DNA from: Girardia tigrina
Lineage: Eukaryota
DNA: 50,927 nucleotides
NCBI GenBank assembly: GCA_001938485.1
Contig: MQRK01224578.1
Coordinates: 52,130-103,056 of the forward strand
Direction: 5' to 3'
Position 1 is the first letter of the stretch, and every line of letters starts with the position of its first letter. This document shows positions 444 through 39,528 of this stretch, piece after piece. A program made the translations under genes and the position numbers. The notes under the pieces were generated by a model that did no database searches, had not been told where the DNA came from, and saw only the letters and a program-made list of their open reading frames with translations.

Positions 444-895
444 TGTTAAGAGAACTCACACATTTGACAAAACATTTATTACATTCACATTTTTTATCAT
501 CTTTATGATGATCAATAGTATTGCTTTCACTTAAGTCCATCATTCAATTTTCAATATCTCTTATTATAATCTGAACTATACTTGAGAAGATTATTTTATT
601 TAAAAATATTTAATTTAAATTTTATTGGCTAAGATAAAATATTTTTATAGTCATTTTTAAACATTAATTTGATTTTAATTATTTAAAAATTTACAAAAAT
701 CAATAAAATTATTTAAAAGTTGCAATAATAAAAATTAGCAATTTGAATATTACATCTAAATTTAAATAAATTAGTTTCAGATTATAAGAATTAAAATATT
801 GATCATCCATCTGATTAGAAGAGGCACAATCCCAAATCAACACAAAACATTTAAACACACTACAAAAAACAATTACACACCCTATATTCCTCACA
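444..895 (-). mobile_element. Solo-LTR-like element, subfamily A (TGTGAGG...TTAACA)
   Basis: Flanked by the 5-bp direct repeat ATGTA (439-443 / 896-900). TG...CA ends; AATAAA about 30 bp from the minus-strand 3' end. Colinear with 5589-6044 and 38094-39106. Confidence 0.85.
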
Positions 896-3781
896 ATGTA
901 TATTTTTAATATTATTTGTTATGATATTTTTCTAAAAATTATGTAAAAGTAATTTTGTTTAAATTTGTATTTTTTGTTCAATTTTCGGAAATATTTATAT
1001 TTTTTTATTGGAAGTTGATCTTTATTCGAAACTATTAATAGTGATTATACCCTACGAACGCAACAAGTTTTAGTCGTGATATTCAACTCTTAATTCTAAA
1101 GAAAACTGTATATTTCGATAATTCTTTTCGTATAATTATTTTAGAAAACAAGTACTTTTTTCTCCATCTCCAACAAAATTGATGACTGGTGGGACATTAG
1201 AAAATTTAGAGAATATTAATGGCATCTGATTTCGAGTTTCTTTGTAGGCATTCATTTCAAGAAGGTCTTGTTTGAAGAGGCAACTATTACCTTTCCCTTT
1301 GGACCCTTGAATCGATCCTATGATTTAAATAATGAAGCTTTAAATTAGTAATGATTATTAAAATACTAGTATTATAAAGAATTTAGTAAATGCAGAAATT
1401 TTTGTAATTATGGCATAATTTGAGATGAAACATGAATTTATCACTTCGATTTTGCGTTCATAATAGTGCTGGACACAAAAAACGGTAAATAAAGTGCAAT
1501 TTTGTTTGAAAAATTAGATAAAATTTCTTATTATGGCATTATTTCCACTAATATTTTCACGATTTTAACTGATTAAATTTTTATTTAATAATGTCAATTG
1601 ATTGCATCTTGAGTCATATGATGTCGAAAATAGTTAAGAAATATTCATTCGAGCAAGAATTGCTGAAAGAGATTTTCTTATTCGCAAAAGGAATCAGTGA
1701 TCTTCGTTTTCTTTTGAGAATTTCGAGTGAAGGAGTCTCAACTGAGATTCTTTATATAAAAATCTTTTTAAAATTTCATGCTATGAGAATTCGTCTGGTG
1801 CATGTGTGTGTGAAATCATTTTTTATCACCCTACATAAAATTGCACTTAAAGATTTTATTAAAAATGATGTATTGTGTATATTTTTTTTGAAAATTTAAA
1901 AGTTTATTAGTATAAATTTATTTTTTTAAAAAATCAACGATTAAATATATTTTTAAAGATTCTTCAAATCTTTTAGATTCCGAATAAAATTAAATCTTAA
2001 ATTATGAGGATGATACAATAGATGACATTCGAAAAATAAAGAAAAACATAACCCTATATGTAAGAGTTCAAGCCAAAAGTTTTCAGAGAAACTACGATGA
2101 TACAAGTAAAAATACAGCACATTCAATCATTCAGTTCCTATAATAATGAAGGATGCATGGTTGTGTGGTATATTTATTTCCATTTTTCTAGTTGTTCTCA
2201 ATATTCTTTACTTGTATCTTGAAAACATAATATATATATCGCACAATTAGACAGGCATTCACTAGTTCAAATAATAAAATATAAGAAAAAATGATAAAAC
2301 AGCATATGTAGATGAGTTGTTTCACTTAAGAATATCATGACTTATCTAAACAGAATACACGTTTAACTTTTGACGACACTAATGGAAGACACAGCAGTAC
2401 CATAAGCATACATCTCTTACAGTTTTTACAAAGAAAGTCTGGGGATTGATAAACTCGGGATTATTTATAAATCGTATTATACTATTTAACTAAGTGTTCG
2501 ATTCACATTGGGGGCCGATATCGAAGTAAACCCCCAAAAATAAAAAAAAATCGTCACTTAACATTCGTGAAACAAAATTGTCGAAAAATTGTGAAAATGA
2601 GTCGAAAAAAATACGAAAAATGAAACTTGAATTCGATTCGTCCCGATTTGCTACTCTATTGGATTTAGATTCTATCACGGAAACCAGAATTTTGTTTGGA
2701 AGTTGATTTCAATAATTATCTTAGAGTTGTTTGATAAATGTTTACATTTATTTCACTTCAAAAGAAAACTATATTTGTTGTAACAATTCTTGTGTATTTA
2801 TTCAATTGATTAATTTGGAATCCTACCAATAAATTTCAGAAAAATTTTACATCTAATTGAAGTTTGAATGTATAACTGAAAAGAAAATTAAGGTTTTTTT
2901 TTGTAAAGTGAAAATTTTTAAAAAGAAATCATATTTTGTGAAAATGTTTTATTAAATAATTTTGTGATTGAAAAAAAATTGTATTAAAAAATATGATTCG
3001 ATTTGTTTAAATCGATTAATTGATTATTATGAAACTAGCGAAAAATTAAAAATGTACATGACAGAAAATGAATGTCATTTGAAAATATTGGATTGGCGAA
3101 TGTTGTAAAAATAAGGTTGTTGAACTTAGTCTCTCGTAAATAATAATTTTTTTGTGGAAAATGTTTGAAGTAATTGAAGTGGAAAATTGGTCTATGTGTC
3201 AAATATAAATTGGAAGAAATGCTACTTGTTGAGATGGAAAAATCAAGATCATCTCATGAACTCGGGGGAACCTGATGAACATTTAAATTGCGATGCGTTA
3301 ACTCGAGAGTATCACCGACGAAAAAAATAAAAGAACTGACGAAACGAGTTCAATTGCCCCAAACAATTAATGACACTAACCGGATAATGGAGCATCTGAT
3401 CAAATCGATTGAGTATTCAAAAATAAAAAACTATAATTCGAAGATCGATCGGATGCGCGTGTGTGGGAAGATTTCCTAGTCGGTTTTTTTCCCTCCTGGT
3501 GAACTGAAATTATTTTATTCCCATCATCCCGTAAACACCGACTACCCAACCCGGGACCCCGCGACCGCGCTGCGCTTGCTCTCACACCAATACTAAGTCA
3601 AAGCATATTCCTAACCTATCAGGCCCGACACGGTCTACCTAAATGAGTTATTATTATGTATAAGAAATGTTTACTGATTAATGCAGTTAGTTATATAATT
3701 TCGACTCAATTATTTTTATTTACGTCTTAAAATATTATTTTAATATAAATACGCATTCGTCAAAATTATTTGAATTGTGTA

Positions 3782-4365
3782 AATTAAGAACACTGATTTT
3801 CAATACTTTTATTCACATCACAACTCGAATTGCTTCCAGGACAATTCTCCAAAAACTTTCGTATTTATACATCGTTTTACATTCATTATTTTTAATTCTA
3901 TTTCTAAAACCTCTAATTATTCGATCAAATTAAAATTACAATGTAATTTACAATTTAAATTACAAAAAATTTAAATATTTAAATGTATTTTAAATATATT
4001 ATTTATGATTAAGATATTATTATATATTTAATGATTAAAATATATTAATTTAATTTTAAAGTTGTTGTAAATTTCATCCATCAACTATTAAAAACAAGAA
4101 AACTCGATTTTTGAAATTTTTTATTATTTAATAATTTGGATTATTAAAACAACATTTGTTATTTTAAAATACCTTTTTTAATTATTTAAATAATATTTTT
4201 AATTTAAGTAAATGCACTTTACAGTTGTTATTTAAATTTTGAACGTGTCCGAATAATCTGACGGTTCAAAACATTTGAAATATCAATCTTCCATTTGGGT
4301 GGGAGGAACACAATCATTCAAACAAAATACAACACAATAATCACCATTTGAAAATATTCCTCATA
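3782..4365 (-). mobile_element. Degenerate solo-LTR-like element, subfamily B
   Basis: Starts AATTAAGAACAC and ends AAATATTCCTCATA. Near-perfect direct repeat GTGTA/GCGTA. Shares the CCATTTGGGTGGGAG core with 10405-10924. Confidence 0.7.
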
Positions 4366-4935
4366 GCGTATTTAATTAATTTTTACATTCTCTTGAAACA
4401 CTTTACTCAATTTTTAGATACGGTATTAAGTTTATAATTTTTCGATAATGGAAATATTACAAATCATACTGTCAGTGTATCAGAATAGTTACAACTCATA
4501 TGGGACAGGACTCATACATCACAAATTGTTTTATGGTCCCTCCATACATTACGATTTTCAGAAAAATTCCTTGAACTAATAACTAAATTCATGAACATTA
4601 AAGTAACAAGCACTTATTTGATATCAAATCTTTGAAATTTAACATGTTTAAGTTTACTATCTCATTTGATGAAGGAAATTTGAAATTTCTATAATTACAA
4701 AATTTTTTAGAAATTCTTGCTTGCGTTGTTAATTTACCGAATGCTAATTTAGAATTTTACCTGCCAATAAATTTTGTTTTTACCATAAATTGCATGTACA
4801 AAAACGCTAATAGAAAAACGGAACAAATAAACCAAGACTGAAAAAAATAATTTTTACATTTTTGATACAAATAAAATGTAATATTAAATATGAATTGTTA
4901 AATTCATGTGGTAAAATATAAATATAAGTACGTAC

Positions 4936-5248: not shown

Positions 5249-5413
5249 CTGAAAAAAAATACTAACGCATACTTCAAATCACAAGAGATATTTGATTAAT
5301 TATCAGTTTTTAGTATTAGTAAAGTAAAAAATAGCTTATGATGAATGTGATGACATAAACTTTTATTGTTATTTTTAAGTCGAATCTTTTTGAAGTTTTT
5401 TAAAACATGTCTA

Positions 5414-5480: not shown

Positions 5481-5588
5481 TATGTGTGAAAATAAATTAC
5501 TTTCATGGAAATGTTGACAGTGTCCAATAAGTGCCACTTTGACAAAATACTCTTAGCTGCAAAGATAAAAACTTCTAGTATTCATATT

Positions 5589-6044
5589 TGTTAAGAGAAC
5601 TCACACATTTGACAGACATTTATAACATTGACAATTTTGATAATCTCTATGACAATCAATAGTATTGCTCGCACTTAAATCCATCACTCAATGTTTAATA
5701 CTCCTCCTTACAATCTGAACTAACTTGAAGAAAATTATTTTATTAAAATTATTTAATTTAAATTTTATTGGCTAAAATAAAAATAATCATTTTTAAACAA
5801 TAATTGGATTTTAATTATTTAAAATTTTACAAAAATAAAATCAATAATATTATTTAAAAGTCACAATAATAAAAATAAAAAATTTGAATATTAAATCTAA
5901 ATTTAAATAAATTAGTTTCAGATTATAAGTATTAAAATATTAATCATCCATCTTGTATTGGGAGAGGCACAATCCCAAATCAACACACAACATTAAGCAT
6001 GCAAACACGACACAAAAACATCAACACACCAAATATTCCTCACA
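5589..6044 (-). mobile_element. Solo-LTR-like element, subfamily A
   Basis: TGTTAAGAGAAC...TTCCTCACA with the direct repeat ATATT (5584-5588 / 6045-6049). Colinear with 444-895. Confidence 0.85.
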
Positions 6045-7429: not shown

Positions 7430-9674
7430 ATAATTTTTCAATCTCCGTAGTAATCCAGTTGTCGAAAATGTAATCGGTTCTCACTCATACCTTCGTAGCC
7501 TCCTCGAAAAAAATGATTTAGGGTTAATACATTGCTCCTTCAAAATTTTGAATCCACAATTAGCCTTTCATTCAAAATTTTAATCATAACCATTAATAAT
7601 TCTTCATCGTAGATTATATCATCTCCAAAGACTTTTCTCAGAACTTTCTTGGTCTCCCTTATCATCACGTCAGACACTCATCTGAAAGGAGGCGTTTCAG
7701 GTGTATTTAAAATCAAATTTCATTTTATTTTTCAAATTTTTCTTGCTCAGAGAATACATATCGACGAATATTAGGTTTTTTAAAAAATAATGTCGTTTTT
7801 TGAGGGGTCCTGATTTTTTGACATGTTTTGAAATAAATCTTTATGATTTATTTATGTTTTATACATAATTTTAAAGCTTATGAAAAACTCTGTATTTCTA
7901 TGATACTTTTTTTTAAATATTAACTTTAAAATAACGTGTTTATTTAAATAGTTGTCAATATGCAAAAAGTGCAATTACGAGCAATTTTTTATATGAATTC
8001 AAACTTGACCACAAAGCATCGGAGCCCGCCCGTAATATTAACGGGGCATTGGACGATGGAAATACAAACGAACGTATGTTACAATGTTGGTTCAAAAAAT
8101 TTCAAGAAGGAAATGAGACCCTCAAAGATTATGATGGCTGTGGACGGAAATCTGCTATTGAAAATGAAAATTTGAAGGCTCTATTAGAAGCAAATCCACG
8201 CAAAACAGTTCGAGAGCTTGCGGAGGAACTAGGTGTCACGATAGGAACAATTTCAAACCATCTGCATGACATTGGGAAGTCGAAAAAACTAGATAAATGG
8301 ATTCCTTACGAATTAAATGGCAATAAAAAATGCTTCGTTTTGAGGCATCGTCTTCATTTCTTCTGCGGAACAAGAATGATCCGTTTCTGGATCGAATTGT
8401 AACGTGTGATGATAAATGGATTCTCTACGACAATCGGTTACGTTCTTCTCAATGTTTGGACCACAATCAAGCTCCGCAACCCTTTCCGAGGACGAAATTG
8501 TACCAAAAAAGATGATGGTGACTGTTTGGTGGTCTGTAGCCGGTGTTATTCATCGTAACTTCCTAAATCAAAGAGAAACAATTACGGTAGAGAGATACTG
8601 TCAGGAAATTGTCAAAATGAACCAGAAACTCCAACACAACAACCAGCATTATTCAATAGGAAGGGGCCTATTCTTCTCCACGACAACCCTCGGCCACACA
8701 TCGCACGTCTGACAATGCAACTGTTGAACGAACTTGGCTATGAAACTTTGAGTCATCAACCACACTCACCAGACCTCTCGCCTACTGATTATCACTTTGT
8801 CAAACATCTTGACATTTTCCTCCAGGAGAAATACTTCAAAAATCAATGGGATGCTAAAACTGCCTTCAACGATTTCATCGCCTCCAGAAAGCCAGAATTT
8901 ATGGAACCGGAATAAATAAAATTGTGCAACATTGGCAAACGTGTATTGATGCTAACTGTTTTTATTTCGATTAATAAAATTGATTCTACGCTGAGATATA
9001 TTAGTCTTTAAAGATTAAGGTTAAAAAACGACATTATTTTTTAAACAACCTTAAATTTGTCCCATTATCAGAAATAATGATTGCAGGAATCTTGCCATTA
9101 ATCTCTCGAAAGCTCTGGAAAATGAATATGTGTCTAAAACAGCTGGTCACTTCCAAATGTATTGCAAAGAGGAAAATTAACACAAATATCTTTTCTGGTA
9201 GATTTTTCCTGTATAGTCAAAGAAGGTCCTGCCAAACCCACTACAGTATTGGCAAATACCATAAATGGCTCTTCAAGTCGGAGTCATCTTTTGGATGGTG
9301 CTTGTTTTAGTTTCGGATTGACAACGCTCACAATCTTTTTTCACCTCTATTTATTTTCTCGTTCCGATAATCTCGAATTTTTTATTTAATTCAATCAATA
9401 AATAATTTTTTCCATCATAATGATTCGTTTTTTCATGTAAATCAATGATTACTGATTTCGTAAACATTGATTTCGTAGGTAAGATTATTGGATACTTCCT
9501 TTTGTAAGGTAACCAATTTACATTATTAATTAGAGAGTTACTTCTTTTGATCTCATCCTCATTTAGATACGGATTCAGAAATTTTAATTTACTGTCATTT
9601 GACACATCTAACTCTCTTTTCAACCTTTTGATATCTTCGGGAAATTTTTTTGTTTTGAACTGAAAAGAAGACAT
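7430..9674 (-). pseudogene. BEL/Pao integrase remnant split by a mariner insertion
   Basis: Upstream part reads LNPYLNED...KYPIILP...LHEKTNH and IISDNGTN (about 9054-9080). It continues left of the mariner as NTPETPP...KKVLRKVFG...ILNER...LTLNHF. Confidence 0.7.
7771..9053 (+). mobile_element. Full-length mariner element with frameshifted transposase (about 7959-8975)
   Basis: TIRs TTAGGTTTTTTAAAAAATAATGTCGTTTTTT / AAAAAACGACATTATTTTTTAAACAACCTTA. Motifs WIPYEL, IVTCDDKW, HDN and HSPDLSPTDY spread over several frames. Confidence 0.92.
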
Positions 9675-9679: not shown

Positions 9680-11075
9680 AGTTGTTTTTCTTTAATTTTC
9701 CGTATCATATCTTACAATTTGTTGCAGTAGACATCTGCTGTGATTTAAGAACAAAATTTCATGAAGTCATAATGAATTGCACCTGTGGTAGACCAAAAAA
9801 GATTCACCGTCAGCTTCCTTTGATAAATCCTGTGCTTTTGACTGTGTTTTAGTGCTTCATTCGTGTTCACACAGCTTGCTAAACGTTTGTGATTATCATG
9901 TTTGATCTAATTTTCATCGCAAGTGATGACTCGATTAAAAAAATGATCACATTTATAAGAAAGAATCATCAAGGAAGCATTCAAACGATTTTGTTTCTAC
10001 TTTTCATTCAACTTATGTGGAATTCACTTATCCTACTTTTTCACGTTGCCAATTTTAGCCAAGTGATTCAATATTATTTGCTTTGTAACAGTAAATGTTA
10101 GCGACAAATTATGAGCACTTTGTAATGGATCCGACTCCATGGTTACTTCCAGTTCTTCATTATCTACCTGCATTCTTTTGGTGACTCCGAGACTCACTAT
10201 TGAGGTTTAAATTATCTTTCACGAATTTCTTGAAATAATTTGACAGTCTGCTGCTTAGTATCGTATCTCACTACACTATTGATGTTTCGCTTTGTGTCTA
10301 ATGTTGAAGTTCAACGTAAGATTTCATACTTCAAAATAATTTGAATTTCTGATTTTTCCAATTTTTAAAATACTGATTATTAAAACAAAGGTATCAATAA
10401 TTTTTATTAAGAACACCAACATGGGTTTCCGAACTTTTATTTTCGATACAATTATAATTGTCTTTTGGACAACTCTCAGCAAAGCTTTTGTAATTCGACA
10501 TTATTCTAAATTGATGAATTTTAGTTAATGTTTTTAATAAACAATTATTCGAACAAATTTTTCATTATTTTCAGATTTAATTTTTAAAGTTCTAATTTTG
10601 TAATTTTAAGTAATAATTTTATCTACATATTAATTTTATTTAAAAATGATTTTATGTAAAGAAAGAACATTTATTTAATTTAAAACTTAGTTAAAAGCTA
10701 TTTACTTTATTTAAATTTTTAACATGCAAATTTGAAACGATTTAATATTTTTTAAGTTTTTTTAAATATCTTTTGATGTACTTTAAAATGCAAATTATAC
10801 TCGAATAATTATTTATCATGAACATCCAAAATATCAATTTTCCATCTGGGTGGGAGATGCACATTTCCAAATACTAAACTCAACATACAAAATTCAACAT
10901 ACCAAATTTAAAATATTCCTCACAATTTTAATTTTTATTGATGAGTTCAATAGCCAAGATATGTAACAATCAAACAAATAAAACTGAGCAACAAAATGTT
11001 TAATGATTGTCAAATTATAACTTTTTGAATTTATTGTAATCATGCCTACAAATTTCATACATATAACAAAGATAA
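9680..11075 (-). mobile_element. Truncated mariner copy, interrupted by a solo-LTR-like element
   Basis: Colinear with 22270-23058. Minus-strand start MKYEILR at about 10331. The 5' UTR is interrupted at 10405-10924. Confidence 0.8.
10405..10924 (-). mobile_element. Solo-LTR-like element, subfamily B (TGTGAGG...TTAATA)
   Basis: Direct repeat ATTTT (10400-10404 / 10925-10929). The empty site is visible in the paralogous mariner at about 22950-22985. Colinear with 20833-21372. Confidence 0.9.
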
Positions 11076-12102
11076 TGTAATCATAAGTTTATAATATTAA
11101 GTTATTTGAAAATTCTAAAAAAATGAAACATTTTGATAATCGATGGAGCGTCGAATTGTTGATACAAAATTATAGGTAATTACTTAGTTATGTAGAGAAA
11201 TAGAAACATCTTTACAAACGTTAGACATTCGAAATTTCAAAAAATACACAATAATTCATTGCGATGGCCGGCATCAGCATAGAGGAACAATAGCAGTCTT
11301 CAAAAAGTCATTCTCTCTTCTTAGAGTAACTTAACTTTTCTTCAGTGAAAACCTTTGTATTTTTTTAAAAAATTGTTTATTCGGTATCATTATACTCGGG
11401 TTTAAACTGCGTTTAATAAACAAATATTTGATGACAAAAGTTCAGAGATTTGACGTTGAAAATAGACAAAATTGATCATTGTGTAATGAACAAACAATTT
11501 TCAATAGTGTTCTACTTTGAATCACGAGTTTCGAATAATTTATTGCTTTCAAATATTGTGCTAATTAGTGCCATAGAAATGTTTGTTGATACCACTTCGA
11601 TGACATTTACCGCTCATTATTATTATTATCGCTATTTGAGTTTCAACGCGCGTAAGAAGAGGTATAATTTGCATTTTTAGATAAGTAGAAATTCATCAAT
11701 TAATCCTTGAAATGTTAAGAATATTTGTACTAATTTACTATAGATTGTTTCTAATACTCATTTTTTTCTAATACTCAATTCTTTTAAAAATTATGAAAAC
11801 TTTTCAATTTACTCCAATAATTACGTTACTAGTTTATTTAATTAACAAATCAATTTAGTTTTAATAATAAAAATAACAATTTTAAAATAAATTACTTAAT
11901 TTTATAAGAGGATTTTTAAGGGACTCGAATTTTATTTTTTAATTTAAACTTTTTAATAGTTTATAATTAAAATAAGTCACTAAATCTCAATCTATCTAAC
12001 AGTTGATTGTTTTCTATATGTAAAATGGTTAACAAATTATTTACCAGGCATTTGAAAGGATAAAAATACTTGGATCAGTGGTATACACAGGAAGTAAATT
12101 AA

Positions 12103-12768: not shown

Positions 12769-14436
12769 TAAACCATTTAAAGATCAAATTCAAACTTTGA
12801 AAGGTCAAATTCGAAATTTCTAAAGCGAAGTCATCTTATGACAAATGTAGAAAGATTTAATTGTTATCATTTTTTGGTTCGTTTTACTTTGTAGTTCTTT
12901 GTTTATTTATATCATTTGGCAGCTGTATTCACTATTTATAGAACACTGCTTATTTTCCAATTACCTTTTCACATCATCGATAACATTTCGATGCCTAAAT
13001 AGAACTTTTGTTTCAGTCGGTGAGTTCAGTGAAACTTTATTCTATTTTAGCTTCATTAAAGAATATTTTTTTAGTTTTGAATTGCGATTATAGACAGTTT
13101 TTATTTTAAGTTATTTACGATAGTGTATAGGGTAACGAAGAAGTAAAAAAGATAGGTAGTAAAACAGGTGTTTGAAGAGGAGCTTATGAAAGATCAACAT
13201 AAGTTATTCATCGTCGAGTTATACTATCGTATGACAATGGAGAGAATTGGTAAGCGGTAGCGTCAGCCAATGGCACCAAAAGAGGAACTGCTTACGGATG
13301 GATCCGCAAAGTGATACATGTTCAGAAAAAAACCAGAAGCAGATAACAGCCTGAAAAATAAACGGAAAAGAAAAGAATTTGTCGAATCTTTCATGCAGTT
13401 TGGTCTTAATAGCATGTAGTACATTTTATGTATTCATGCACATTTTCTTTTTAAATTTAGGCGAACGGGAATGGAAAATTATTGTACATGGATGAAAGCA
13501 ACGAGAACCTTTTTAAAAAAGAGAAATGGAGAGATCTGCAGTTTGCTAGAGAGCTTTTATGATACTGCTGTCAACAAAAGGCTCCAGTGTGCATATGATT
13601 ATGGTCATGACACAAACTGACGTTGTGCATTTAACGAGAAAGCGTGGATTTTTCAAGACTTGCGATTGTAACAATTGATTGAAGGATGACATAAGCAAGC
13701 TGGTAGAAAAAAAGGAATTCCAGCACAAAATTATGTAATAGTTCAGGATAATGCACAATGGCATTCTCGAATTGAGTCTTTTGAAGAAAATGGATTCACG
13801 ATTTTGCGTCAGGTACCATATTCACCAATGTTAAATCCAGTGGAGTCGGCTTGGAGCGTCATTAAGAGTCATTTGAAACAAAAGGAAGCAGCGTCGGTAA
13901 CAAACAATTTTAACAGCAAACCATTGAGGCCTCTCACAAACGGAATGGTGATTGAGATACGTCGAGAGATTAATTGATTAAGTCTTAGAAACCATTACAC
14001 CTTTGATGACTTTACAAATAGTTCTGGATCATTTCCAATCATTTTTTTCGGATGCTTTGCAAATAAAGGATATTGGACCAGGTCTAGGAAGTTTTTCATA
14101 CGATGAACTTGTATTAATGTTCCTTTTATTTTCAATGATTAGAAATTATATACATACTGAGTAGAGAGAATTGCTTTATATTTTGCATGGTTTATAACTC
14201 ATATTAAATGTACAAGGAAATAAATGAAGAAATATTCAATCTGCATTATTCTTTATCGTGATCGACTCAAAAAATACTCTTACAAAAGATTATAACTGAT
14301 AAATTTGCAAGGGTTTACAAATTATTTACCCTTTAATCTTACAAATTTTGAAATTTGATTTTACAAAATTTGAATTTGGTTTTACGAAATTTGAATTTGA
14401 TCTTTCAAAGTTTGAATTTGATCTTTAAATGGTTTA
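12769..14436 (+). mobile_element. Decayed Tc1/IS630-like DDE transposon
   Basis: Long TIRs AAACCATTTAAAGATCAAATTCAAACTTTGAAAG / CTTTCAAAGTTTGAATTTGATCTTTAAATGGTTT. Broken ORF with YMDESN, QDNAQWHS and PYSPMLNPVESAWS. Confidence 0.85.
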
Positions 14437-16541: not shown

Positions 16542-16760
16542 TGTGAGGAATATTTTGAATGTTTGATGTTTTGTGTTTGAATGTGTATGTTGATTTGGAA
16601 TTGTGTCTCTCCTTTCCAGATGGATGATTAATATTTTAATTCATATTATCTAAAAATGTGTAATGTTTAAATTTATTTTTAATTTAAAATAATTGTAAAA
16701 TTTTAAATAAGTTAATTAATTTTTACATTTTTTCATAAATAAATCGAATTAATATTTTTT
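16542..16760 (+). mobile_element. 3'-truncated solo-LTR-like element
   Basis: Begins TGTGAGGAATATTT. Nearly identical to 39103-39310 for about 200 bp, then the similarity stops. No direct repeat is recoverable. Confidence 0.75.
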
Positions 16761-19360: not shown

Positions 19361-19473
19361 GCAAATGGTCCGCATATTCACAATCGGTCAACCATATAAA
19401 TACTAACGCAACCGTTGGTTGTTTGACTTCAGAGATCGGACGAGATACGATGTACCCAACCGCGGCCATTGAT
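19361..19473 (-). rRNA. Divergent 5S rRNA gene or pseudogene
   Basis: The minus strand has ATCTCGTCCGATCTCTGAAGTCAAAC, GTTAGTATTTATATGGTTGACCG and GAATA at 5S spacing. Terminal helix CAATGG/CCATTTG, followed by TTTT. About 113 nt, so slightly short at the 5' end. Confidence 0.75.
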
Positions 19474-20537: not shown

Positions 20538-20763
20538 ATGATTTGAGTATACATAAATGTTTTGGTTAGCTTCGAATTACGGAACTTATTACAGTTTTAA
20601 TATTTATATCCAACAACTTCACACGTTATAACTTTTCCCATCTAAAGAAATATCTTTAGATGGGAAAAGTTATAACGTGTGAAGTTGTTGGATATAAATA
20701 TTAAAACTGTAATAAGTTCCATAATTCGAAGCTAACCAAAACATTTATATATACTCAAATCAT
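20538..20763. repeat. 226-bp palindrome (111-bp arms, 4-nt loop, 2 mismatches)
   Basis: The arms 20538-20648 and 20653-20763 are reverse complements apart from two transitions. Confidence 0.95.
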
Positions 20764-21900
20764 CCGTAATTGTATGTGTACTATCCCATTATAGTTGCGA
20801 CGGTAGATGCTTGAGTAACAAATTTTTATATTTATTAAGAACACCAACATGGGTTTTCAAACTTTTATTTTCATTACAATCAGAATTGTCTTTTGGACAA
20901 CTCTCAGAAAAACTCTCGTCATTCAACATCGTTCTAAATTGATAATTTTTTGTTAATGTTTGTTAATAAACAATTATTCGAACAAATATTTCATTATTTT
21001 CTGATTTTATTTTTAAAATTCAAATTTTGTAGTTTTAGTATTAATTTTTATTTACATATTAATTTTATTTAAAAATTATTTTATGTAAAGAAAGAACATT
21101 TTATTAATTCAAAACTTAGTTAAAACTATTTATTTTATTTAAATTTTAATATGAAGATTTGAAAAGATTTAATATTTTTAATGTTTTTAAATATCTTATG
21201 TTGTACTTTAAAATATAAATTATATAAATTATACTCGAATAATTATTTATCGTGAACATCTAAAATATCAATTTTCCATGTGGGTGGGAGAAATACATTT
21301 CCAAATACTAAACTCAACATACAAAATTCAACAAACCAATTTCAACATACCAAATTGAAAATATTCCTCACAATATTCATTGATTTTGTCATATCTTTAA
21401 TTATTTTGAACTCAAATGTTTTCAGATTATCCGAATGAATTTCTTTCGGTGCTCCGAATCTCAAGATTCATTTCGTCAATACGGTGACTTTAATAGTTTC
21501 TTCATCCTGTTTTCTGACAAAGATATGTGCCTTGCTGCAATATTCTTTTTCTTTCTCCAAGACTTCTTTAGTGGTCCACATATGTCTATGTACAACTTCT
21601 AAAATTTTTCATTTGCGAAAAGTGTCATTCGTTCTTCCTTTGTAGCAATCCTTAATGTTTTACTTTTCTGACATGACAAAGGTTTTATTATTTCATCCCA
21701 GTTGATCATGTCATTATTTTCTCTGATGTATTTCGACAATTTCTCTGCGCTTGTATGTGACAAAGATTATGTATCTGTATGATCCTTTATTCTCTTTTCG
21801 ACTTTGGTATTCAAATTTCCCAGAATTCATCTTCAATGATAAATTTTCTACCTTTACATAAATTAAAGTTCTTTTAATTTCTTCTATTTTTCCTATTGAA
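20764..21900 (-). pseudogene. Gypsy integrase remnant interrupted by a solo-LTR-like element
   Basis: The minus strand reads HTSAEK...CQKSK, then QDEETIK...ILRFGAPKEIHSDN. It resumes beyond the insertion as NIKICYSSIYRRNYNGIV. Confidence 0.65.
20833..21372 (-). mobile_element. Solo-LTR-like element, subfamily B
   Basis: TATTAAGAACAC...TTCCTCACA with the direct repeat ATATT (20828-20832 / 21373-21377). Confidence 0.9.
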
Positions 21901-22004: not shown

Positions 22005-23058
22005 TTGAATAAAAATTGGTGGGCGAAAATCTATAATTTCTTAGAAGGCAATTTTTATGAGATCTTCGAATTGAATTTTTTTCCTATTAAAACGTTGTTC
22101 AAATTGAGGAAGAAATGGTAGTCCGTTGAGGCTAAGTCTGCTGAGTATGAAAAGGATGCAGAAGTTCCCTGTAGTCCCCAGAAGTTCCCTTATCAAAGTC
22201 TTACGTGCAATATGTGGCTCTGCATTGTCGGGGAAAAAGATGAGAGTCGACCTATTTACAAAATGCGGCTGTTTTTCTTAGAGTTTCCGTATCATTTCTT
22301 CAATTGGTTGCAGTAGATATCTACTGTGATCGAAGAACTAAGTTTCATGAAGTCATAATAGATTACACCTGCATTAGACCACAAAAGACTCATTATCAGC
22401 TTCTTTTGATGAAAAGTGTATTTTTTTACTGTGTTTTGGCGCTTCATTCGTGTCAACAAAGCTTACTGAACGTTTGCAATTTTCATATTGAATCAATTTT
22501 TTCTCACAACTGACGATTCCATTCAGAACGTGATCACATTTTTAAACAGAAAGCATCACTAAGACCGTAAGCAAAGGTTTTTGTTTCTGCTTTTCATTCA
22601 ACTCATGTAAAATTCGGTTATCCTACTTTTTCTTTTTTGCTTTGTAACAGCAAACGTTAGCGATAAATCATGAGCACTTTATGATGAATTCGACTCCATG
22701 GTTACCTTCAGTTCTTCATTGTTTACATGCAATTCTAGGCAACCCCGAGACTCATTATTGAGGTTAAAATTACCTATCACGAATTTCCTGAACCAATTTG
22801 AGACCGTTTTCTCCGCAGAATTATTGTATCCGATAATTATTGATGTCTTCCATGGTTTCTGATACTGAAGTTCAACGTAGAAACTCGTACTTCATAATAG
22901 TTCGAATTTCTGACTTCCTTTTTTTTAAATACTGATTATTAAAACAAGTTATCAATAATTTTAATTACTTTTTGATGTTCAATAGCCAAGATATGTAGCA
23001 ATCAAACAAAAAATTTATTATAATCATGCCTACAAATTTCATACTTGACAACCTAATA
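22005..23058 (-). mobile_element. Decayed mariner element
   Basis: 5' TIR TATTAGGTTGTCAAGTATGAAATTTG. Start MKYEFLR at about 22895. Motifs DNAEPH and YSADLASTDYHF. Confidence 0.85.
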
Positions 23059-23185
23059 ATATAGCCATATCTATTTTTTATCGATTGTCTCTTCAAAGCT
23101 ATCCATCGAATACTAATCTCCCCAGAGGTACAAAAAATAATAATTTATATATTTTATTGTTTCATTCAAATAATATTACAATGTC

Positions 23186-23632
23186 TATTAGCAAGATCAT
23201 AATTTGAGTGTAAACATTTCTTAACAACACAAACATTTTCATTAGCAGTTTCTGTAGGAAGCATCTTTTTTGATTAATGTCTTTGTAGCTATATTCAAAT
23301 CTCTAAATTAATTAATGAGATAAGAATAAAATATTAACTTTTAATTTCTTAAAATTTTATTGGATAAAAATGCATTAATTAATTTTTAAAATCAACATTA
23401 GTTTTTAAAATATAAATAATTCAATAATTTAAATCGTTTACTAAAAATATTATTAAACTCTATAATTATAAAACTTTTAATTAATTAGTATTTAAACATT
23501 AATCTCATTAAATTAATTTCATTAGATTTAAATAATTAATCAATAACATATCAATCACATCTGAATAGGAGAGTCACCAATCTAAACAGCATACAAACAA
23601 CAAACCTACAACATTCCGAATTTTCCCTCACA
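23186..23632 (-). mobile_element. Solo-LTR-like element, subfamily C
   Basis: TATTAGCAAG...TTCCCTCACA with the direct repeat ATGTC (23181-23185 / 23633-23637). Confidence 0.85.
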
Positions 23633-23794: not shown

Positions 23795-25042
23795 TCACCT
23801 GGAGTCATCAAAAAAGTCTCTAGTTTCGACAGTTTCGTTAAAAGTGACGCTCTTCGGTCGTGTAAGACTTTTACCAGCCGGTGATTTCCGTTGTTCGTTC
23901 TCCGCCATTTCGAGATCAATTCGAGTTTTGTCTTTTTCACGTTTCACTATATCGATATTCGTCGTCGCATTCGATTGAGTTTCGGGTATTTTCAACTGAA
24001 TTTGTTTAATTTTTGCCGGCTCTGATTCGGTTTTTAAGGAATTGGCATTCGCAAATAATTCCTCATTCGAAACGGGTTTAATATCAGAATAAACAACATC
24101 AATATCCAACATTGCTTCTTTTCGACGCTGTTTTCGATACTCTTCAACTTCTTGTTTTACCTGAAGATAGAGACTCTGGGGCTTGGAATTCTGGAAAAGC
24201 AACGGCGTGTTTTTCCCATCAGATGATGACTTGTTGGGTTGGGATATCAGCGACGGTTTTCGATTAGGATTATAAATCAACGCATCGGTTTTATAGGATT
24301 TCACGTAGTACTTGGCAGAAACATCTCTATTCGAATTGATAGAAGAAGAGTTATCGGTTATAACGGGTGCTGCAGTAGTTGGTCGAATTTTATCACGAAG
24401 TTTTTGATTGAAATTGTCATTAAAAAAACCCCCAGAAAAATTTGAGACATTTTCCGTGAGAATTGAGTCCTTTTTAGGATGAGAGTTTGGAGTTAAAACA
24501 GTCGTTGGTTGTATTTTATGGATCAATTTATCATTAGAATGAGTTACAGCGGGGATCGTTTCGATTGGTTTTGAGAGATCATTCGAAAGTTTTCGTTGGA
24601 GGTTTTCCGAATTATCGGTTCGAGTGGATTGGAGACGTAGAAAGACATTGTCGGAGAAATCGTTTGTTTTTAAATTTTTCGAAGATAGTTTAATAAAATT
24701 ATGACCGTATTGCAATGGATTATTATTATTATTAGTGTTACTATTATTATTATTGATATTATTTTCTCTGTTAAATAAACTCGTCGATTTTAACCGATCT
24801 AAACTCAGTGGCTTTAAATATGGATCAGAAATTATCGATCGTTTTTCAGGATTGCCATTGACATTACCGTTTAACCGCGAGAAATTGTGTAAGAGATTAT
24901 TGAGACTAGATTGAGAACTCAAACCGAATTCCATGAAAGGAAACGGTGACGAAAATCCATTCGGTGATTGATTAACGAATTTATGGAAATTCGGTCGTTG
25001 GATTTGATCACGATGGAACACTGGATTTTCTTTATTCATCAT
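23795..25042 (-). CDS. 415-aa hypothetical Asn/Ser-rich, probably disordered protein with a C-terminal RVxF-like motif (KSVTF)
   Basis: Long uninterrupted ORF with higher GC than its flanks. No recognisable domain. Confidence 0.75.
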   Translation of the reverse strand: MMNKENPVFHRDQIQRPNFHKFVNQSPNGFSSPFPFMEFGLSSQSSLNNLLHNFSRLNGNVNGNPEKRSIISDPYLKPLSLDRLKSTSLFNRENNINNNNSNTNNNNNPLQYGHNFIKLSSKNLKTNDFSDNVFLRLQSTRTDNSENLQRKLSNDLSKPIETIPAVTHSNDKLIHKIQPTTVLTPNSHPKKDSILTENVSNFSGGFFNDNFNQKLRDKIRPTTAAPVITDNSSSINSNRDVSAKYYVKSYKTDALIYNPNRKPSLISQPNKSSSDGKNTPLLFQNSKPQSLYLQVKQEVEEYRKQRRKEAMLDIDVVYSDIKPVSNEELFANANSLKTESEPAKIKQIQLKIPETQSNATTNIDIVKREKDKTRIDLEMAENEQRKSPAGKSLTRPKSVTFNETVETRDFFDDSR

Positions 25043-26685: not shown

Positions 26686-26748
26686 AATTTTTAAAAGAAT
26701 GACATTTTTATAAAACAAAAGATATGTCATTTTAAAATATATTTTATC

Positions 26749-26790
26749 ATGATAATATATTTCGTCGATTTTACCGTCATCTTCAGATCA
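26749..26790 (-). ncRNA. Minimal hammerhead ribozyme (Penelope type), slightly degenerate
   Basis: TGAT-CTGAAGA-T-GACGG-TAAAA-TCGAC-GAAA-TATA-TT-ATCA. One mismatch in stem II. Confidence 0.6.
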
Positions 26791-26813
26791 CTGATTTTTA
26801 GCTTGTTTTATTG

Positions 26814-26846
<33 letters not shown>

Positions 26847-26852
<6 letters not shown>

Positions 26853-27808
26853 AAAATAATAGACGCCATTTTAAAAGTTTTTTATTTCCCAAAACATGTT
26901 TCGCCATTACGGCATCATCAGTTGTGAAGTAAATNNNNNNNNNNNNNNNNNNNNNNNNNNNNNNNNNNNNNNNNNNNNNNNNNNNNNNNNNNNNNNNNNN
27001 NNNNNNNNNNNNNNNNNNNNNNNNNNNNNNNNNNNNNNNNNNNNNNNNNNNNNNNNNNNNNNNNNNNNNNNNNNNNNNNNNNNNNNNNNNNNNNNNNNNN
27101 NNNNNNNNNNNNNNNNNNNNNNNNNNNNNNNNNNNNNNNNNNNNNNNNNNNNNNNNNNNNNNNNNNNNNNNNNNNNNNNNNNNNNNNNNNNNNNNNNNNN
27201 NNNNNNNNNNNNNNNNNNNNNNNNNNNNNNNNNNNNNNNNNNNNNNNNNNNNNNNNNNNNNNNNNNNNNNNNNNNNNNNNNNNNNNNNNNNNNNNNNNNN
27301 NNNNNNNNNNNNNNNNNNNNNNNNNNNNNNNNNNNNNNNNNNNNNNNNNNNNNNNNNNNNNNNNNNNNNNNNNNNNNNNNNNNNNNNNNNNNNNNNNNNN
27401 NNNNNNNNNNNNNNNNNNNNNNNNNNNNNNNNNNNNNNNNNNNNNNNNNNNNNNNNNNNNNNNNNNNNNNNNNNNNNNNNNNNNNNNNNNNNNNNNNNNN
27501 NNNNNNNNNNNNNNNNNNNNNNNNNNNNNNNNNNNNNNNNNNNNNNNNNNNNNNNNNNNNNNNNNNNNNNNNNNNNNNNNNNNNNNNNNNNNNNNNNNNN
27601 NNNNNNNNNNNNNNNNTTTATTGTACTTCGGATCACAGAAACTCATAGGATTATTGTATAAACCCGTGTCAGTACTCTTTCGAAATACTTCAGTTTCATA
27701 GCCCTTCGATTTTCTTTCAATTAATACATCCAAAATGAAATAAAAAACTTTTAAAATTGCGTCTATTATTTTTATTTTTTACAAATAAATTGCCATTAAA
27801 TCTTAATG

Positions 27809-27810
<2 letters not shown>
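26847..27810 (-). mobile_element. 5'-truncated Penelope-like element with inverted pseudo-LTR, set within (TA)n (centre is an assembly gap)
   Basis: RT C-terminus LDVLIERK...TEVFRKSTDTGLY (27617-27733). Inverted repeat 26847-26888 / 27737-27778. (TA)n on both sides. Confidence 0.8.
26889..26925 (-). ncRNA. Minimal hammerhead ribozyme (Penelope type)
   Basis: CAA-CTGATGA-T-GCC-GTAAT-GGC-GAAA-CATG-TT-TTG. Confidence 0.8.
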
Positions 27811-27847
<37 letters not shown>

Positions 27848-29063
27848 TGATGATTGAGCAATCTATTAAGTAAAATTAATCGGAAACTCTTAACAAGTTG
27901 GTTTAGAGTACCTTTTGAACATTAATTTTAGGGTCACGAGATCTTAACAAAGCTTTTCACGACACTCTTCAAATAAGTTTTAAAAGGCTTACATCGAATT
28001 TTGAAATAATTTATACTCAAATTATATTTACAAGTTGTCCTATGTTCAGTCATATTACTCTTACCCCCTCTATAAGCGTGTTCTTTGACTAGTTATATGA
28101 TATTATACCGTCGAAATATATTATCATGAAAAAATATATTTTGAAATGGAATATCTTTTGTTTTATAAATTATATTATTTAATTTTCTTCCCTGTAATAA
28201 AAGCGGGTTCATTGAATCATTATTATTCAGTGAACTCCTTATTATAATATTGATCGAAAACTCCCATATTTTCGAAATTATTAAAAAAAATAACAGAAAC
28301 AAATTTATAATTAAACCAAAACACAAAAAAGGACATTTAAACAACTTAAATGAAAATAATATAAAAAGACGAATGTCTAATACACGGATTAAGTTAACTT
28401 GTCCATAGGTTGACACTTTCAAACCGATTGGGATCGATAAACACATACACCCGAGAATTCTTATTTCATTTGAAATAAAATTCAAATTTTTTTTGGAAAA
28501 TTCATAACCGAAAAATTCAAAAATAATTTCAATCAATATTCTTTATTAAAATGAAAACTATTTTTAAAAACAATAGTGGGTAAAAGTGACATTTATTTCA
28601 CTTATTTGCGTTCAATATGAAAGTATTATCGAAACGAATAAAAATGATTTCAAATTGAATTTAAATAAAAAATGAATCGTTGTTTTATGAATACGTTTTT
28701 TCAAAAAAAAATAAGAAAATTAAAATAACAATATGATAAAATTTCAATTACGATTTGAATAAATCAACTTACATCGATAATTCATAGATTTTAAAACATC
28801 TCGACTGGATTTTATATGTTAAGCAATTTATTTAAACAAATGTGTGAAAATTGTTTTCATTTGCATAAAGAATATTAATTTATATTATTTTTGATTTTTT
28901 TTCGTTGTGAATTTTATGAAAAATAAATTTCAATTTAAGTTAAATGAAATGAGAATTTTTTTATTAATAATTAAAGAAAACAGAATGTAGTTTTAAATCG
29001 AAATTTTCAAAATTTGTGGTATGATTAATATAAAATGTGTGGAATTTAATTTAATACAAAGAC

Positions 29064-30505: not shown

Positions 30506-30509
30506 AAAG

Positions 30510-35285: not shown

Positions 35286-35471
35286 GATTATAAAGAGCTG
35301 GAAGCAGAATAAAGAAGGTCAACCAGTGATCTGGAAAATTATGATTGGATAAGAAATTCTGCAGGGATTCTTTTGTGATTATGTAAAATATAATTTGCGA
35401 TTGTTTTTTTCCTTTCTTTATGTTAGCTGCTTGTTATATTTATGTTTTATGCCGAATTCGCGAACTATTTG

Positions 35472-37040
35472 ACAAATTTACATTTTAGTATGAAAATTAA
35501 AAGTTAAAAAAATATAAATTAAATTTGAAAATATCTCAAATTATTGTGCCAAATAGACTCCAAATGTAAACAAATTTACATTAGTATGAAAATTAAAAGT
35601 TAAAAAATATAAATTAAATTTGAAAATATCTCAAATTATTGTGCCAAATTGACTCCAAATGTAAAATTTTTATTCAGTTTTTACAATTTGGTTGCAAACT
35701 GAATTGCAATAGTATGTTTTCATATTTAAAGCAGAATTTTCATAAATAAATACATATTTTAATTAATATTTTTTTCATTAAATGTTAATGTTAATTTCAT
35801 AATTGAAATAAAAAAATGGGTATAGTACCGTGCGGGCCCGAGCAAATATAAAAAATATCAGTATTCCAAGAAAAATAAATTAAAAATTTTTAAGTAACCT
35901 AATTGCCATGGAAAACACCTATATTGATTACATAATTACTAGCTTCTAAATTTCCAATTATTTAATATTTTTTCTTATTTTGCATAGAAAAATAAATTGA
36001 AAATAATTTTAAAAAACAGAAAATTTAAAAAAAAATATTCATTTAAATATAAAAAATTAAAAAAAATATAATGAGTATGAAATCAAATTATTAATTATTT
36101 ATTTAATTCTGAAATCGTGGTACAAATATTTCCAATATTAAGTCGAATAATTTCTAAAATAAATCAGTGAAACCAATGATTGCGCAACCAATACATATAT
36201 TTTCCTTTGAGATTTTATATAAAACATTTTACTTTGACTTAAAAAAAAATATATAAATGTTTAAATTATTTTTCCTGGAATGTTGATAATTTTTTATACA
36301 AATGTTAAAGTTTGGAGAAAATTAATTTAGTAAAAGGCCTTCAAAAATAGGTTTCTAAATTCATAAATTCGGCAATAGATTGCTAAAATGGTGCAATTGC
36401 CGAATTCACTGACTATATGAAAAGGTATCAATTTAATGTGAACAAAATCTCACATTAATAAGCAAAATAGACTCCAAATGTAAACAAATTTACATTAGTA
36501 TGAAAATTAAAAGTTAAAAAATATAAATTAAATTTGAAAATATCTCAAATTATTGTGCCAAATTGACTCCAAATGTAAAATTTNNNNNNNNNNNNNNNNN
36601 NNNNNNNNNNNNNNNNNNNNNNNNNNNNNNNNNACAAATATTTCCAATATTAAGTCGAATAATTTCTAAAATAAATCAGTGAAACCAATGATTGCGCAAC
36701 CAATACATATATTTTCCTTTGAGATTTTATATAAAACATTTTACTTTGACTTTAAAAAAAAATTATATAAATTTTTAAATTATTTTTCCTGGAATGTTGA
36801 TAATTTTTTTATACAAATGTTAAAGTTTGGAGAAAATTAATTGAGTAAAAGGCCTTCAAAAATAGGTTTCTAAATTCATAAATTCGGCAACAGTTTGCTA
36901 AAATGGTGCAATTCATGAACTAGTCAAATTTTACGAATTCACTGACTATATGAAAAATTATTAATTTAATATGAAAAAGTATCAATTTAATGTGAACAAA
37001 ATCTCACATTAATAAGCAAAATAGACTCCAAATGTAAAAT
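35472..37040. repeat. Local tandem duplications around an assembly gap
   Basis: A ~100-bp unit occurs twice at 35472-35665 and again at about 36480-36583. About 350 bp at 36122-36480 recurs at 36634-37040. Confidence 0.8.
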
Positions 37041-38285
37041 TTTTAGTCATAATTAGGTTATACTACAGTACGTACAATTAATTTTCTCCAAACTTTAACA
37101 TTTATTCAATTTCGATGACAATGAATGATAATGTGAAAATTTGATTAAATTAATAAATCAAATTTTTTGTCAAAAAAATGTTTTACGATTATCCGCAAAT
37201 GTTTAAACTGTTAAATAGAAATGTTTTGTTTTTTCATTCCATGCTTTATAATAAATTTATTATTTTATTAGTAACTATTTATTTGCAAATGGAGTTGTAA
37301 AAATTTTTGGTATGAAATTTTCCATTCTGAAAAAGATATAAATATAACTAATAAGCTATTAAATTAATTTATTGTAAAACTAGTATATCAAAAAAATTTT
37401 TCATCAATTCTTTATGTGGACAGAACACTACTTGACCAACAGAATTCTTAGTTATCTTTTGTAGAAGGGAAAATTTGCATTAAATTTTTAAATAAATTTA
37501 TTGTTATTAGCAATAAATTTATTAGAAAATTTTGATTTACTAGTTTACAATAAATTAATTAATTTAATTACTTTTTCATTTAAAACTGTGACAACTTCAT
37601 TTTTTAATTTGAATTTATGAAATTCTATTTTTTGTATGATAAGTTTTTAAAAAATTTTTAATCTTTTATTTTTTAAAATTTTTATCTGTTTTTTTTGTTT
37701 GCTTATTTCGCAGATCTTTATCATTTATACTTATTTCAAAATATTTTGTAGTAAGTTTGTATTGCCTGCTTTAGTTTGATTGATTTATAATTAAATATAA
37801 TGAATGTGAACGATGCGTGTTGATACATCCAAATGCGGTCCAATGGAGTAAAGGCGAATTGTGAATTTCAAAAAATTTGGAACGCGTTACATGTGATATT
37901 AAGGCGCTATTTATTTTACGTCCGTTGTATTTTACAATGTGTTTTTTGCTTTTTTGAATTGTAAGTGTTATTGATGAGTTAGTTTAAATTTACTCTTCGC
38001 CAAAATAGTTTATTATATTTTTAATTTGAAAGTTTTAAAAAGTTAAATAAATACAAAAAGTTTTAAAATTAAAAAGATATTATAAAGAAAAAAACATTTC
38101 TTATCATCTTTATGATGATCAATAGTATTGCTTTCACTTAGATCCATCAATAAATTTTCAATATCTCCCATCATAATCTAAACTATACTTGAGAAGACCA
38201 CTTTATTTAAAAATATTTAATTTAAATTTTAATGGCTGAAATAAAATAGTTTTATAGTCATTTTTAAACATTAATTTGATTTTAA

Positions 38286-38942
38286 AATCAAAACTTGAAA
38301 GCCAATTAAAAACGTTTATTAATTTCGACGGTTTAACCGTCATCGTCAGAACAAATGGTTTTTCAAACGAAATTTACTTATATAGTGCAGTTAATGATTA
38401 TGTAACCAATACGTAATCAGTACATCATTTAAAAACTCTCAACAAAGTTGTAGAGAGTGCAGTTTGAACGTTAATTTTAGGATCGAAAGATCTAATATAT
38501 AACGCTTCACAAGTCACTCTCTCCCAATAATTTTTAAATTGAGTGCACAGAATTTTAAAGTGTTGTGAATTTATATCTCCTTTACATTGTCTTCTATGTC
38601 CTGCAATGTTACTTCCACCTTCATTGCGANNNNNNNNNNNNNNNNNNNNNNNNNNNNNNNNNNNNNNNNNNNNNNNNNNNNNNNNNNNNNNNNNNNNNNN
38701 NNNNNNNNNNNNNATGAGATCCGAACACAATCCCAATGGCGTTGGAGATTTATTGCCGAACATGCTTTCAATTTTCTGTGTACGGGATATTACTTTTAAA
38801 CTTATTGCATTATCTAACGCTTTCAAAATAGATTTTTTAAATATTTTAAATGACGGTTAAACCGTCGAAATTAATAAACTTTTTTAATTGGCTTTCAAGT
38901 TTTGATTTTAATAACTTGCCAATTTTATTTCAATTTATTCAC
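38286..38942 (-). mobile_element. 5'-truncated Penelope-like element (GIY-YIG end) with inverted pseudo-LTR
   Basis: ORF ends HFKIL...ERVTCEALYIRSFDPKINVQ. Inverted repeat about 38283-38343 / 38850-38911. 13-bp target duplication AATTTGATTTTAA (38273-38285 / 38943-38955). Confidence 0.88.
38311..38353 (-). ncRNA. Minimal hammerhead ribozyme (Penelope type)
   Basis: GTT-CTGACGA-T-GACGG-TTAAA-CCGTC-GAAA-TTAA-TA-AAC. Confidence 0.75.
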
Positions 38943-39102
38943 AATTTGATTTTAATTATTTAAAAATTTACAAAAATAAAATCATTAAAATTATTTAAAA
39001 TTTGCAATAATAAAAATTAAAAATTTGAATATTAAATCTAAATTTAAATAAATTAGTTTCAGATTATAAGAAATTAAATATTGATAATTCATCTGGTTAG
39101 GA

Positions 39103-39528
39103 GAGGAATATTTGAATGTTTGATGTTTTGTGTTTGAATGTGTATGTTGATTTGGAAATGTGTCTCTCCTACCCAGATGGATGATTAATATTTTAATTCT
39201 TATTATCTAAAAATATGTAATGTTTAAATTTATTTTTAATTTCAAATAATTTTAAAAAAGTTTATTAATTTTTATAATATTTAATAAATAAATCAAATTA
39301 ATATTTTTTAAATAATCAATTATCATTTTAATTATTATCCAATAAGTTTTGAGTGAATATTTTATTAAAATATTTATTTCCCCATTTGCTAAAAAAATAA
39401 TAAGAATTAATTCATTAATCAATTTCGCTTTGAATGCAAATGTACGAAAGTTTTGACAAAGATTGTCGTAAGGACAATCAAAATTGTTGTTTAAATAAAA
39501 ATAAAAAGTTAAATTGGTGTTCTTAATA
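39103..39528 (+). mobile_element. Solo-LTR-like element (B-related) lacking its first 3 nt
   Basis: GAGGAATATTT...GGTGTTCTTAATA. Its 5' half matches 16542-16760. Confidence 0.8.

Follow-up and report, generated by a model that had tools for sequence, protein, structure and literature searches.

The stretch analysed here, hereafter the window, comprises 50,927 nucleotides (nt) of contig MQRK01224578.1 from Girardia tigrina. It is AT-rich, with a G+C content of about 28% and islands of 35–42%, and its positions 444–39528 hold a dispersed family of ten related, non-coding units, which are the subject of this analysis. A preliminary description of this DNA had noted a layout like that of solo long terminal repeats (LTRs), had seen no parent element and had held the situation unusual enough to need a special mechanism. 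Our comparisons support the layout and point to a plainer history, in which the ten units are probably, at a probability of about 0.8, solo LTRs left by several related old families of one LTR-retrotransposon lineage.

Ten dispersed units and their insertion signature

BLAST of the ten intervals against the window, a repeat finder and a MAFFT alignment confirm related sequence at all ten places previously listed, with seven complete and three truncated copies (Table 1). The copies fall into four sub-groups, where at least three had been proposed, and their middles align only within sub-groups. Sub-group 1 holds the copies at 444–895 and 5589–6044 and both pieces of the copy at 38094–39106, which are 92% and 90% identical to 444–895 by BLAST. 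Sub-group 2 pairs 10405–10924 with 20833–21372 and has a distant relative in 3782–4365, and sub-group 3 pairs 19845–20275 with 23186–23632. Sub-group 4 consists of 16542–16760 and 39103–39528, the only two copies reversed with respect to the other eight, in agreement with the earlier count of eight in ten pointing the same way. Nearest copies are 77–92% identical by BLAST; a global identity matrix that tolerated gaps gave values inflated by AT-richness and was hence left unused. No open reading frame (ORF) was found within any of the ten units. Pattern searches of prokaryote genomes and JGI metagenomes yielded no further member of the family, which shows only that the host genome is absent from those collections.

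The boundaries of the units were set by homology, and the sequences that abut them were then scored for target-site duplications (TSDs). Six of the seven complete copies are flanked by exact 5-bp TSDs (ATGTA, ATATT, ATTTT, AACTC, ATATT and ATGTC), and the seventh, at 3782–4365, by GTGTA and GCGTA, which match at four of five positions; the direct repeats claimed for all seven are therefore present, one of them a base off. The chance of a five-of-five match at a random site in the window is 0.002–0.003, giving a binomial P of about 8e-16. Flanks of different copies share no homology, which indicates that the copies are separate integrations and not segmental duplications.

One insertion can be compared with a paralogous empty site. 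The site lies in an older dispersed repeat, about 1.4 kb long, of which the window has two copies (9683–11124 and 22270–23176) that are about 75% identical. The second copy runs uninterrupted through ...tatcaataATTTTaatt...gttcaatagccaagatatgta... and contains a single ATTTT, whereas in the first copy exactly TATTAAGAAC...CCTCACA is inserted, with ATTTT on either side. The right-flank alignment at the empty site scores 119, against 68 ± 7 for shuffled sequences (maximum 99). The comparison thus establishes an insertion with duplication of ATTTT and fixes both the boundaries of copy 10405–10924 and its non-canonical TA start. No reciprocal empty site was found for the copy at 23186, where the homology has decayed.

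The three incomplete copies show different routes of decay: simple truncation at 16542–16760, a nested insertion combined with truncation at both ends at 38094–39106, and, at 39103–39106, a tail-to-tail junction of two inverted copies through a 4-nt overlap. Past 39528 the rest of the first copy does not reappear, so the junction does not represent a clean nested insertion. The insertion nested in copy 38094–39106 spans 38282–38911 and has 62-nt inverted arms (38282–38343 and 38850–38911, 98% complementary). This insertion is foreign to the LTR copy and contains a gap at 38630–38713, the true length of which is uncertain. The LTR pieces around the insertion are collinear with positions 44–235 and 223–381 of copy 444 (BLAST) and, together with the complementary arms, make order and orientation across the gap consistent.

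Layout, orientation and probable solo-LTR identity

All copies share one architecture: a conserved end of about 50 bp, an unalignable AT-rich middle and another conserved end of about 150 bp. Read on the forward strand of copy 444, the short end begins T(G/A)TTAAGA..., and the long block runs ...AAATAT(C/T)(A/G)ATC.TCCATCTGGGTAGGAGAG.CACA..., continues through a CA-rich tract and closes with ...AATATTCCTCACA. The core 17-mer CCATCTGGGTAGGAGAG, allowing up to three mismatches, has eight matches in the window, all of them within copies, where 0.02 are expected. In the alignment the two remaining copies carry a more diverged core. A terminal 13-mer has 14 matches against 3.0 expected.

The termini read T(G/A)T...ACA. 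Their tips match each other in inverted orientation at about 7 of 12 positions, over an imperfect stretch of about 11 nt, and beyond this the matching is background (8–12 of 30); no long terminal inverted repeats (TIRs) are present in the units. The ...ACA end is found in every complete copy except the decayed 3782–4365, which ends ...ATA. Two of the seven complete copies start with TG, four with TA and one, decayed, with AA; in the orientation favoured below, the truncated copies at 16542 and 39103 start TGTGAGG and GAGG, respectively.

Several kinds of small non-coding element do not fit these units. TRIM elements and retrozymes are likewise small, non-coding and reliant on other elements, but in them two terminal direct repeats enclose a primer-binding site (PBS) and a polypurine tract (PPT), and retrozymes carry hammerhead ribozymes. 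Within the units we find no internal direct terminal repeats (comparisons of the first 40% with the last 40% score within the shuffle range) and no Rfam match, either at gathering thresholds or at E ≤ 1, including no hammerhead ribozyme, which rules out both identities. RNAalifold gives no shared fold in the conserved 150-nt block. A short interspersed element or other retroposon dependent on a long interspersed nuclear element (LINE) is excluded by the fixed 5-bp duplication and by the lack of an A-tail, as the ends are ...CCTCACA and ...TCTTAACA.

The likely direction of the units is suggested by a polyadenylation-type layout at one end. The hexamer AATAAA lies 29–37 nt before the ...TCTTAA(C/T)A end, in a homologous column, in six of eight copies, with one-base variants in the other two; a signal about 30 bp before a TTARYA end had been described for most copies. 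The background chance of AATAAA is 0.035 per 12-nt window. The hexamer is often followed by CA, and a G/T-rich stretch such as TGTTGGTGTTCTT or TGTGTGAGTTCTCTT follows in the six AATAAA copies and in the copy at 5589; the copy at 23186 lacks such a tail, with 44% G+T over its final 25 nt. In the opposite orientation, AATAAA is absent from the last 90 nt of every copy. An independent guide is the 184-bp LTR of a decayed Ty3/gypsy-like element elsewhere in the window, oriented by its PPT, in which AATAAA lies 35–43 nt before the 3′ end and a U/G-rich tail follows. Since only the direction from TGTGAGGAATA... to ...TCTTAACA gives the canonical layout seen in this oriented LTR, we favour it as the sense orientation with moderate confidence, in agreement with the preliminary description; eight copies then lie on the minus strand. 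In this orientation U3 would hold the GT-rich tract, the CAGATGG-containing core and the fast-evolving AT-rich stretch, and would be followed by AATAAA, a CA of the cleavage type and a short U5, rich in G/T, that ends ...TCTTAACA. This assignment of U3, R and U5 is our interpretation of the layout.

The solo-LTR reading, which the preliminary description had also noted, draws on T(G/A)...CA ends, a duplication of fixed 5-bp length, an LTR-like size and a polyadenylation signal near one end. Most LTR elements make 5-bp duplications (PMC6839031). The parent would belong to Ty3/gypsy, BEL/Pao or Ty1/copia, superfamilies that look alike when judged from an LTR alone. Each complete copy would have started as a full element, inserted by its integrase through a cut with a 5-bp stagger to which the T(G/A)...CA ends were joined. 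Unequal recombination between the two LTRs of the element would then have removed the interior and one LTR-equivalent, leaving a single LTR that keeps the original 5-bp duplication, and the three truncated copies would have been reduced further by deletion, nested insertion and the inverted-copy junction. Six or seven of the seven complete copies match the outcome expected of this presumed recombination route, one LTR between the original duplication.

A close parallel is offered by the delta, sigma and tau sequences of Saccharomyces cerevisiae, the solo LTRs of its Ty elements, which are also a few hundred bp long and non-coding, with TG...CA-type ends and a 5-bp duplication on both sides. 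They outnumber full elements: 427 of 483 Ty insertions (88%) are solo LTRs, and some families are solo-only, such as Ty3p, with 15 solo LTRs and no full-length copy left (PMC3511429). The present units differ in residing in an animal, in lacking sequence similarity to the yeast LTRs, in their frequent TA starts and in showing no evident association with RNA polymerase III genes. The only 5S rRNA gene of the window does lie near a copy, at 19363–19470 on the minus strand (Rfam, 43.4 bits, above the gathering score), with copy 19845–20275 about 375 bp away on its upstream side; a single case permits no inference of targeting.

Within the window, the Ty3/gypsy-like (Metaviridae-type) remnant at 46703–49190, which lies 7 kb downstream of the last copy and was not listed in the preliminary description, offers a second parallel. 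It shares with the units a 5-bp duplication, TGT...ACA ends, first and last bases that resemble theirs (TGT.AGGA... and ...CTTA(A)CA) and an AATAAA about 30–40 nt from the 3′ end, with a G/T-rich tail after it. Its 184-bp LTR, however, cannot be aligned with the 430–585-bp units, and BLAST finds no alignable similarity between it and the ten-copy family, so this element is not their parent. The remnant shows that this genome has taken up LTR retrotransposons marked by TGT...ACA ends and by duplications of 5 bp, which were then eroded by deletion.

Four observations weigh against the solo-LTR reading. First, no full-length or paired copy of the family occurs in the 51-kb window, and no coding sequence, PBS or PPT was found beside the ten units; it is thus the layout that argues for LTR identity, in place of a gag-pol interior seen together with PBS and PPT. 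Second, five of eight intact starts are TA rather than the canonical TG. LTRs with a TA start are known from TARE1, an atypical copia-like element of tomato that also has a high share of solo LTRs (PMC3701649); TARE1 differs in being a plant element of unrelated sequence with short LTRs of 194 bp. Third, the density is high, with about 4.4 kb of LTR in ten copies over 39 kb, which is compatible with insertion-tolerant, repeat-rich DNA. Fourth, the favoured orientation places the best-conserved 150 nt at the 5′ end of U3, usually the most variable part. In the opposite orientation this block would be R-U5, the more usual pattern of conservation, but there would be no polyadenylation signal.

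The missing parent had been one reason to regard the situation as special. Its absence holds for the ten-copy family within 444–39528, but not for retroelements in general, as coding remnants lie at 41.5–43.8 and 46.7–49.2 kb. The call for a special mechanism finds no support: the copies are old, fall into several sub-groups and lie in a transposon graveyard, and with such repeat debris around them, the lack of a parent in a 51-kb sample is expected.

Alternative origins

One alternative is that the units are non-autonomous elements of LTR size that spread as such, with integrase, and reverse transcriptase (RT) if they moved via RNA, supplied by another element. This would account for the lack of an interior, PBS or PPT at all ten copies, for the separate duplication at every complete copy and for the conservation of both ends across sub-groups despite differing middles, but all of these features are equally expected of ordinary solo LTRs. 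A lone LTR would also have no PBS or PPT for reverse transcription, and no structure or ribozyme hints at another route of replication. The few, diverged copies per sub-group (77–92% identity) resemble the decay of several old families and not the burst of a parasite, and solo-only LTR families have already been documented (PMC3511429). We consider this origin unlikely.

The units might also be miniature derivatives of a cut-and-paste DNA transposon with an integrase-like transposase, of the Ginger or GingerRoot type. Such transposons have LTR-like ends (TG...CA or TA...TA, the latter in most GingerRoot elements) and short duplications (PMC6839031), to which the T(G/A)...CA termini and short duplications of our units bear a resemblance, and the absence of PBS and PPT is in keeping with them. 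The length of the duplication speaks against them: it is 5 bp at every scorable copy, compared with 4 bp in Ginger1 and 6 bp in Ginger2 and GingerRoot, and GingerRoot TIRs measure 100–150 bp (PMC6839031), compared with the imperfect 11 nt or so found here. The ends of the units are, moreover, strongly asymmetric, with a polyadenylation-site layout at one only, and no integrase-type transposase gene lacking RT was seen in the window. Descent from such a transposon is very unlikely.

More generally, the proposal that the units are self-sufficient, LTR-sized DNA without an interior, be it bare molecules integrated in trans or the boundaries or substrates of host excision and circle formation, appears highly improbable; nothing in the sequence of the window lends support to either trans-mobilisation or programmed excision. 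The specific idea of signals or substrates for programmed excision or circle formation in a DNA-eliminating host such as a dicyemid deserves hardly any credence: the host is an animal with an AT-rich and repeat-rich genome, chromatin elimination and extrachromosomal circles are reported for dicyemids (PMC6543705, citing Noto et al. 2003), and yeast LTRs are known to yield circles (PMC4751563), but the G+C of the window, about 28%, fits poorly, without excluding it, with the Dicyema japonicum assembly (36.7% G+C, 48.9% repeats and 4.1% gaps; PMC6736024), the TSDs and the empty site mark insertion and not excision scars, no sequence mark of excision boundaries is present, and the idea adds nothing beyond the decay of solo LTRs.

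Genomic setting and annotation

Rather than gene-dense DNA, the window is a graveyard of transposons. Besides the ten units, it contains remnants of mariner-like, Tc1-like (two), LINE-type and Ty3/gypsy-like elements, along with nested insertions and older repeats.

Table 1 Probable solo LTR copies and other features of the window, with the strand of each copy given in the favoured sense orientation (moderate confidence)
Feature	Position	Strand	Description
Solo LTR, complete, sub-group 1	444–895	−	Forward strand reads TGTTAAGAG...CCTCACA; TSD ATGTA at 439–443 and 896–900
Solo LTR, complete but decayed, distant from sub-group 2	3782–4365	−	Ends AATTAAGA...CCTCATA; TSD GTGTA/GCGTA (4/5)
Solo LTR, complete, sub-group 1	5589–6044	−	84% identity to 444–895; TSD ATATT
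Solo LTR, complete, sub-group 2	10405–10924	−	Ends TATTAAGAAC...CCTCACA; TSD ATTTT; bounds from empty site 22958–22962
Truncated LTR, sub-group 4	16542–16760	+	First 219 bp, from TGTGAGGAATA; 90% identity to 39103–39309
Solo LTR, complete, sub-group 3	19845–20275	−	TSD AACTC
Solo LTR, complete, sub-group 2	20833–21372	−	86–87% identity to 10405–10924; TSD ATATT
Paralogous empty site	22958–22962		Single ATTTT in second copy of the 1.4-kb repeat; counterpart of the 10405–10924 insertion
Solo LTR, complete, sub-group 3	23186–23632	−	77% identity to 19845–20275; TSD ATGTC
Sub-group 1 LTR, both ends truncated	38094–39106	−	Pieces 38094–38285 and 38943–39106 around nested insertion
Sub-group 4 LTR without first 3 nt	39103–39528	+	Tail-to-tail with previous copy via 4-nt overlap GAGG
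LINE-type remnant	41552–43803	+	Open 425-residue RT frame; RVT_1, E = 1.7e-29
Decayed Ty3/gypsy-like LTR element	46703–49190	+	TSD GTATG at 46698–46702 and 49191–49195
5′ LTR fragment of Ty3/gypsy-like element	46703–46816	+	About 113 bp; 91% identity to start of 3′ LTR
Broken pol remnant of Ty3/gypsy-like element	46827–48806	+	RVT_1 (partial RT), RT_RNaseH, Integrase_H2C2 and rve, in that order, across all three frames
PPT of Ty3/gypsy-like element	48995–49006	+	AAAAGAAGGGGA; adjoins 3′ LTR
3′ LTR of Ty3/gypsy-like element	49007–49190	+	184 bp; TGTTAGGATAAGAG...GACTTACA

Judged by the placement of domain hits in the three frames, the Ty3/gypsy-like element has undergone one large deletion, which took away the greater part of the 5′ LTR along with the PBS region, gag, protease and the N-terminal RT segment. 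The pol that is left shows four or more frame changes and two or more in-frame stops by the same estimate, and its integrase piece matches retroviral-type integrases in the PDB. GTATG flanks both outer ends of the element, and the string CAGTATG has just two occurrences in the window. We also considered whether the integrase remnant might be followed by an LTR of the ten-copy family that ends at the CCCTCACA at 50343, and rejected this, as the true 3′ LTR is the one at 49007–49190, identified by its GTATG TSD and by its 91% match to 46703–46816.

The RT at 41552–43803 has LINE-1 ORF2p and R2 proteins as its best solved relatives and therefore marks a non-LTR remnant, which is not a parent of the ten-copy family. 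A Penelope-like reading, suggested by a weak GIY-YIG match (E = 0.016), was withdrawn given these relatives. Short zinc-finger-like pieces follow the 425-residue frame in other frames. DNA transposons are represented by a mariner/Mos1-like transposase remnant at about 7935–9386 on the plus strand, with HTH_48 and Transposase_1 matches over several frames, and by two Tc1-like (DDE_3) remnants bounded by inverted repeats, at about 12769–14436 and at 44743–46129, the latter containing the gap 44869–45516.

Beside copy 39103–39528, a parent element was sought in the adjoining ORF at 39873–40466 on the minus strand and rejected, as this ORF is a HEATR5B-like host exon, which marks the DNA as that of an animal. 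Its product is 55–57% identical to annelid and crustacean 'HEAT repeat-containing protein 5B-like' proteins and 87% identical to a 126-residue protein on a 1.65-kb ENA contig, and it has no match in Pfam, NCBIfam or the PDB. The LTRs may sit in introns of this large gene, or the gene may be a fragment. An Asn-rich ORF of 415 residues at 23795–25042 on the minus strand has no family match.

Four runs of N interrupt the window (26935–27616, 36584–36633, 38630–38713 and 44869–45516), and none crosses the ten units' own sequence. The first two fall between copies and within repeats, which leaves their true lengths uncertain: inverted repeats at 26707–26888 and 27737–28169 flank the first, and a tandemly duplicated unit of about 0.5–0.9 kb, at 35450–37050, surrounds the second. 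Other repeats include a near-perfect palindrome at 20538–20763, between two LTR copies, with 111-nt arms (98%) and a 4-nt spacer, which has only sub-threshold, hairpin-type matches to plant microRNA models. At the end of the window lies a GC-rich minisatellite (50731–50919, 21-bp period, at least seven units), preceded near 50680 by a short palindrome of a C-run and a G-run.

The window is accordingly best read as transposon-rich, with short open frames that do not warrant gene models. A plausible candidate for a regulatory region of the ten-copy family is the conserved 150-nt block, whose CAGATGG core resembles an E-box. Such a region would be of interest if LTRs of this kind had been co-opted near host genes, although nothing here shows co-option. 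The ten units themselves would represent an ordinary kind of genomic leftover rather than a novel class of mobile or excised DNA. For annotation we suggest masking them and labelling them as an LTR family, unclassified and comprising four sub-groups, that makes 5-bp duplications and often starts with TA.

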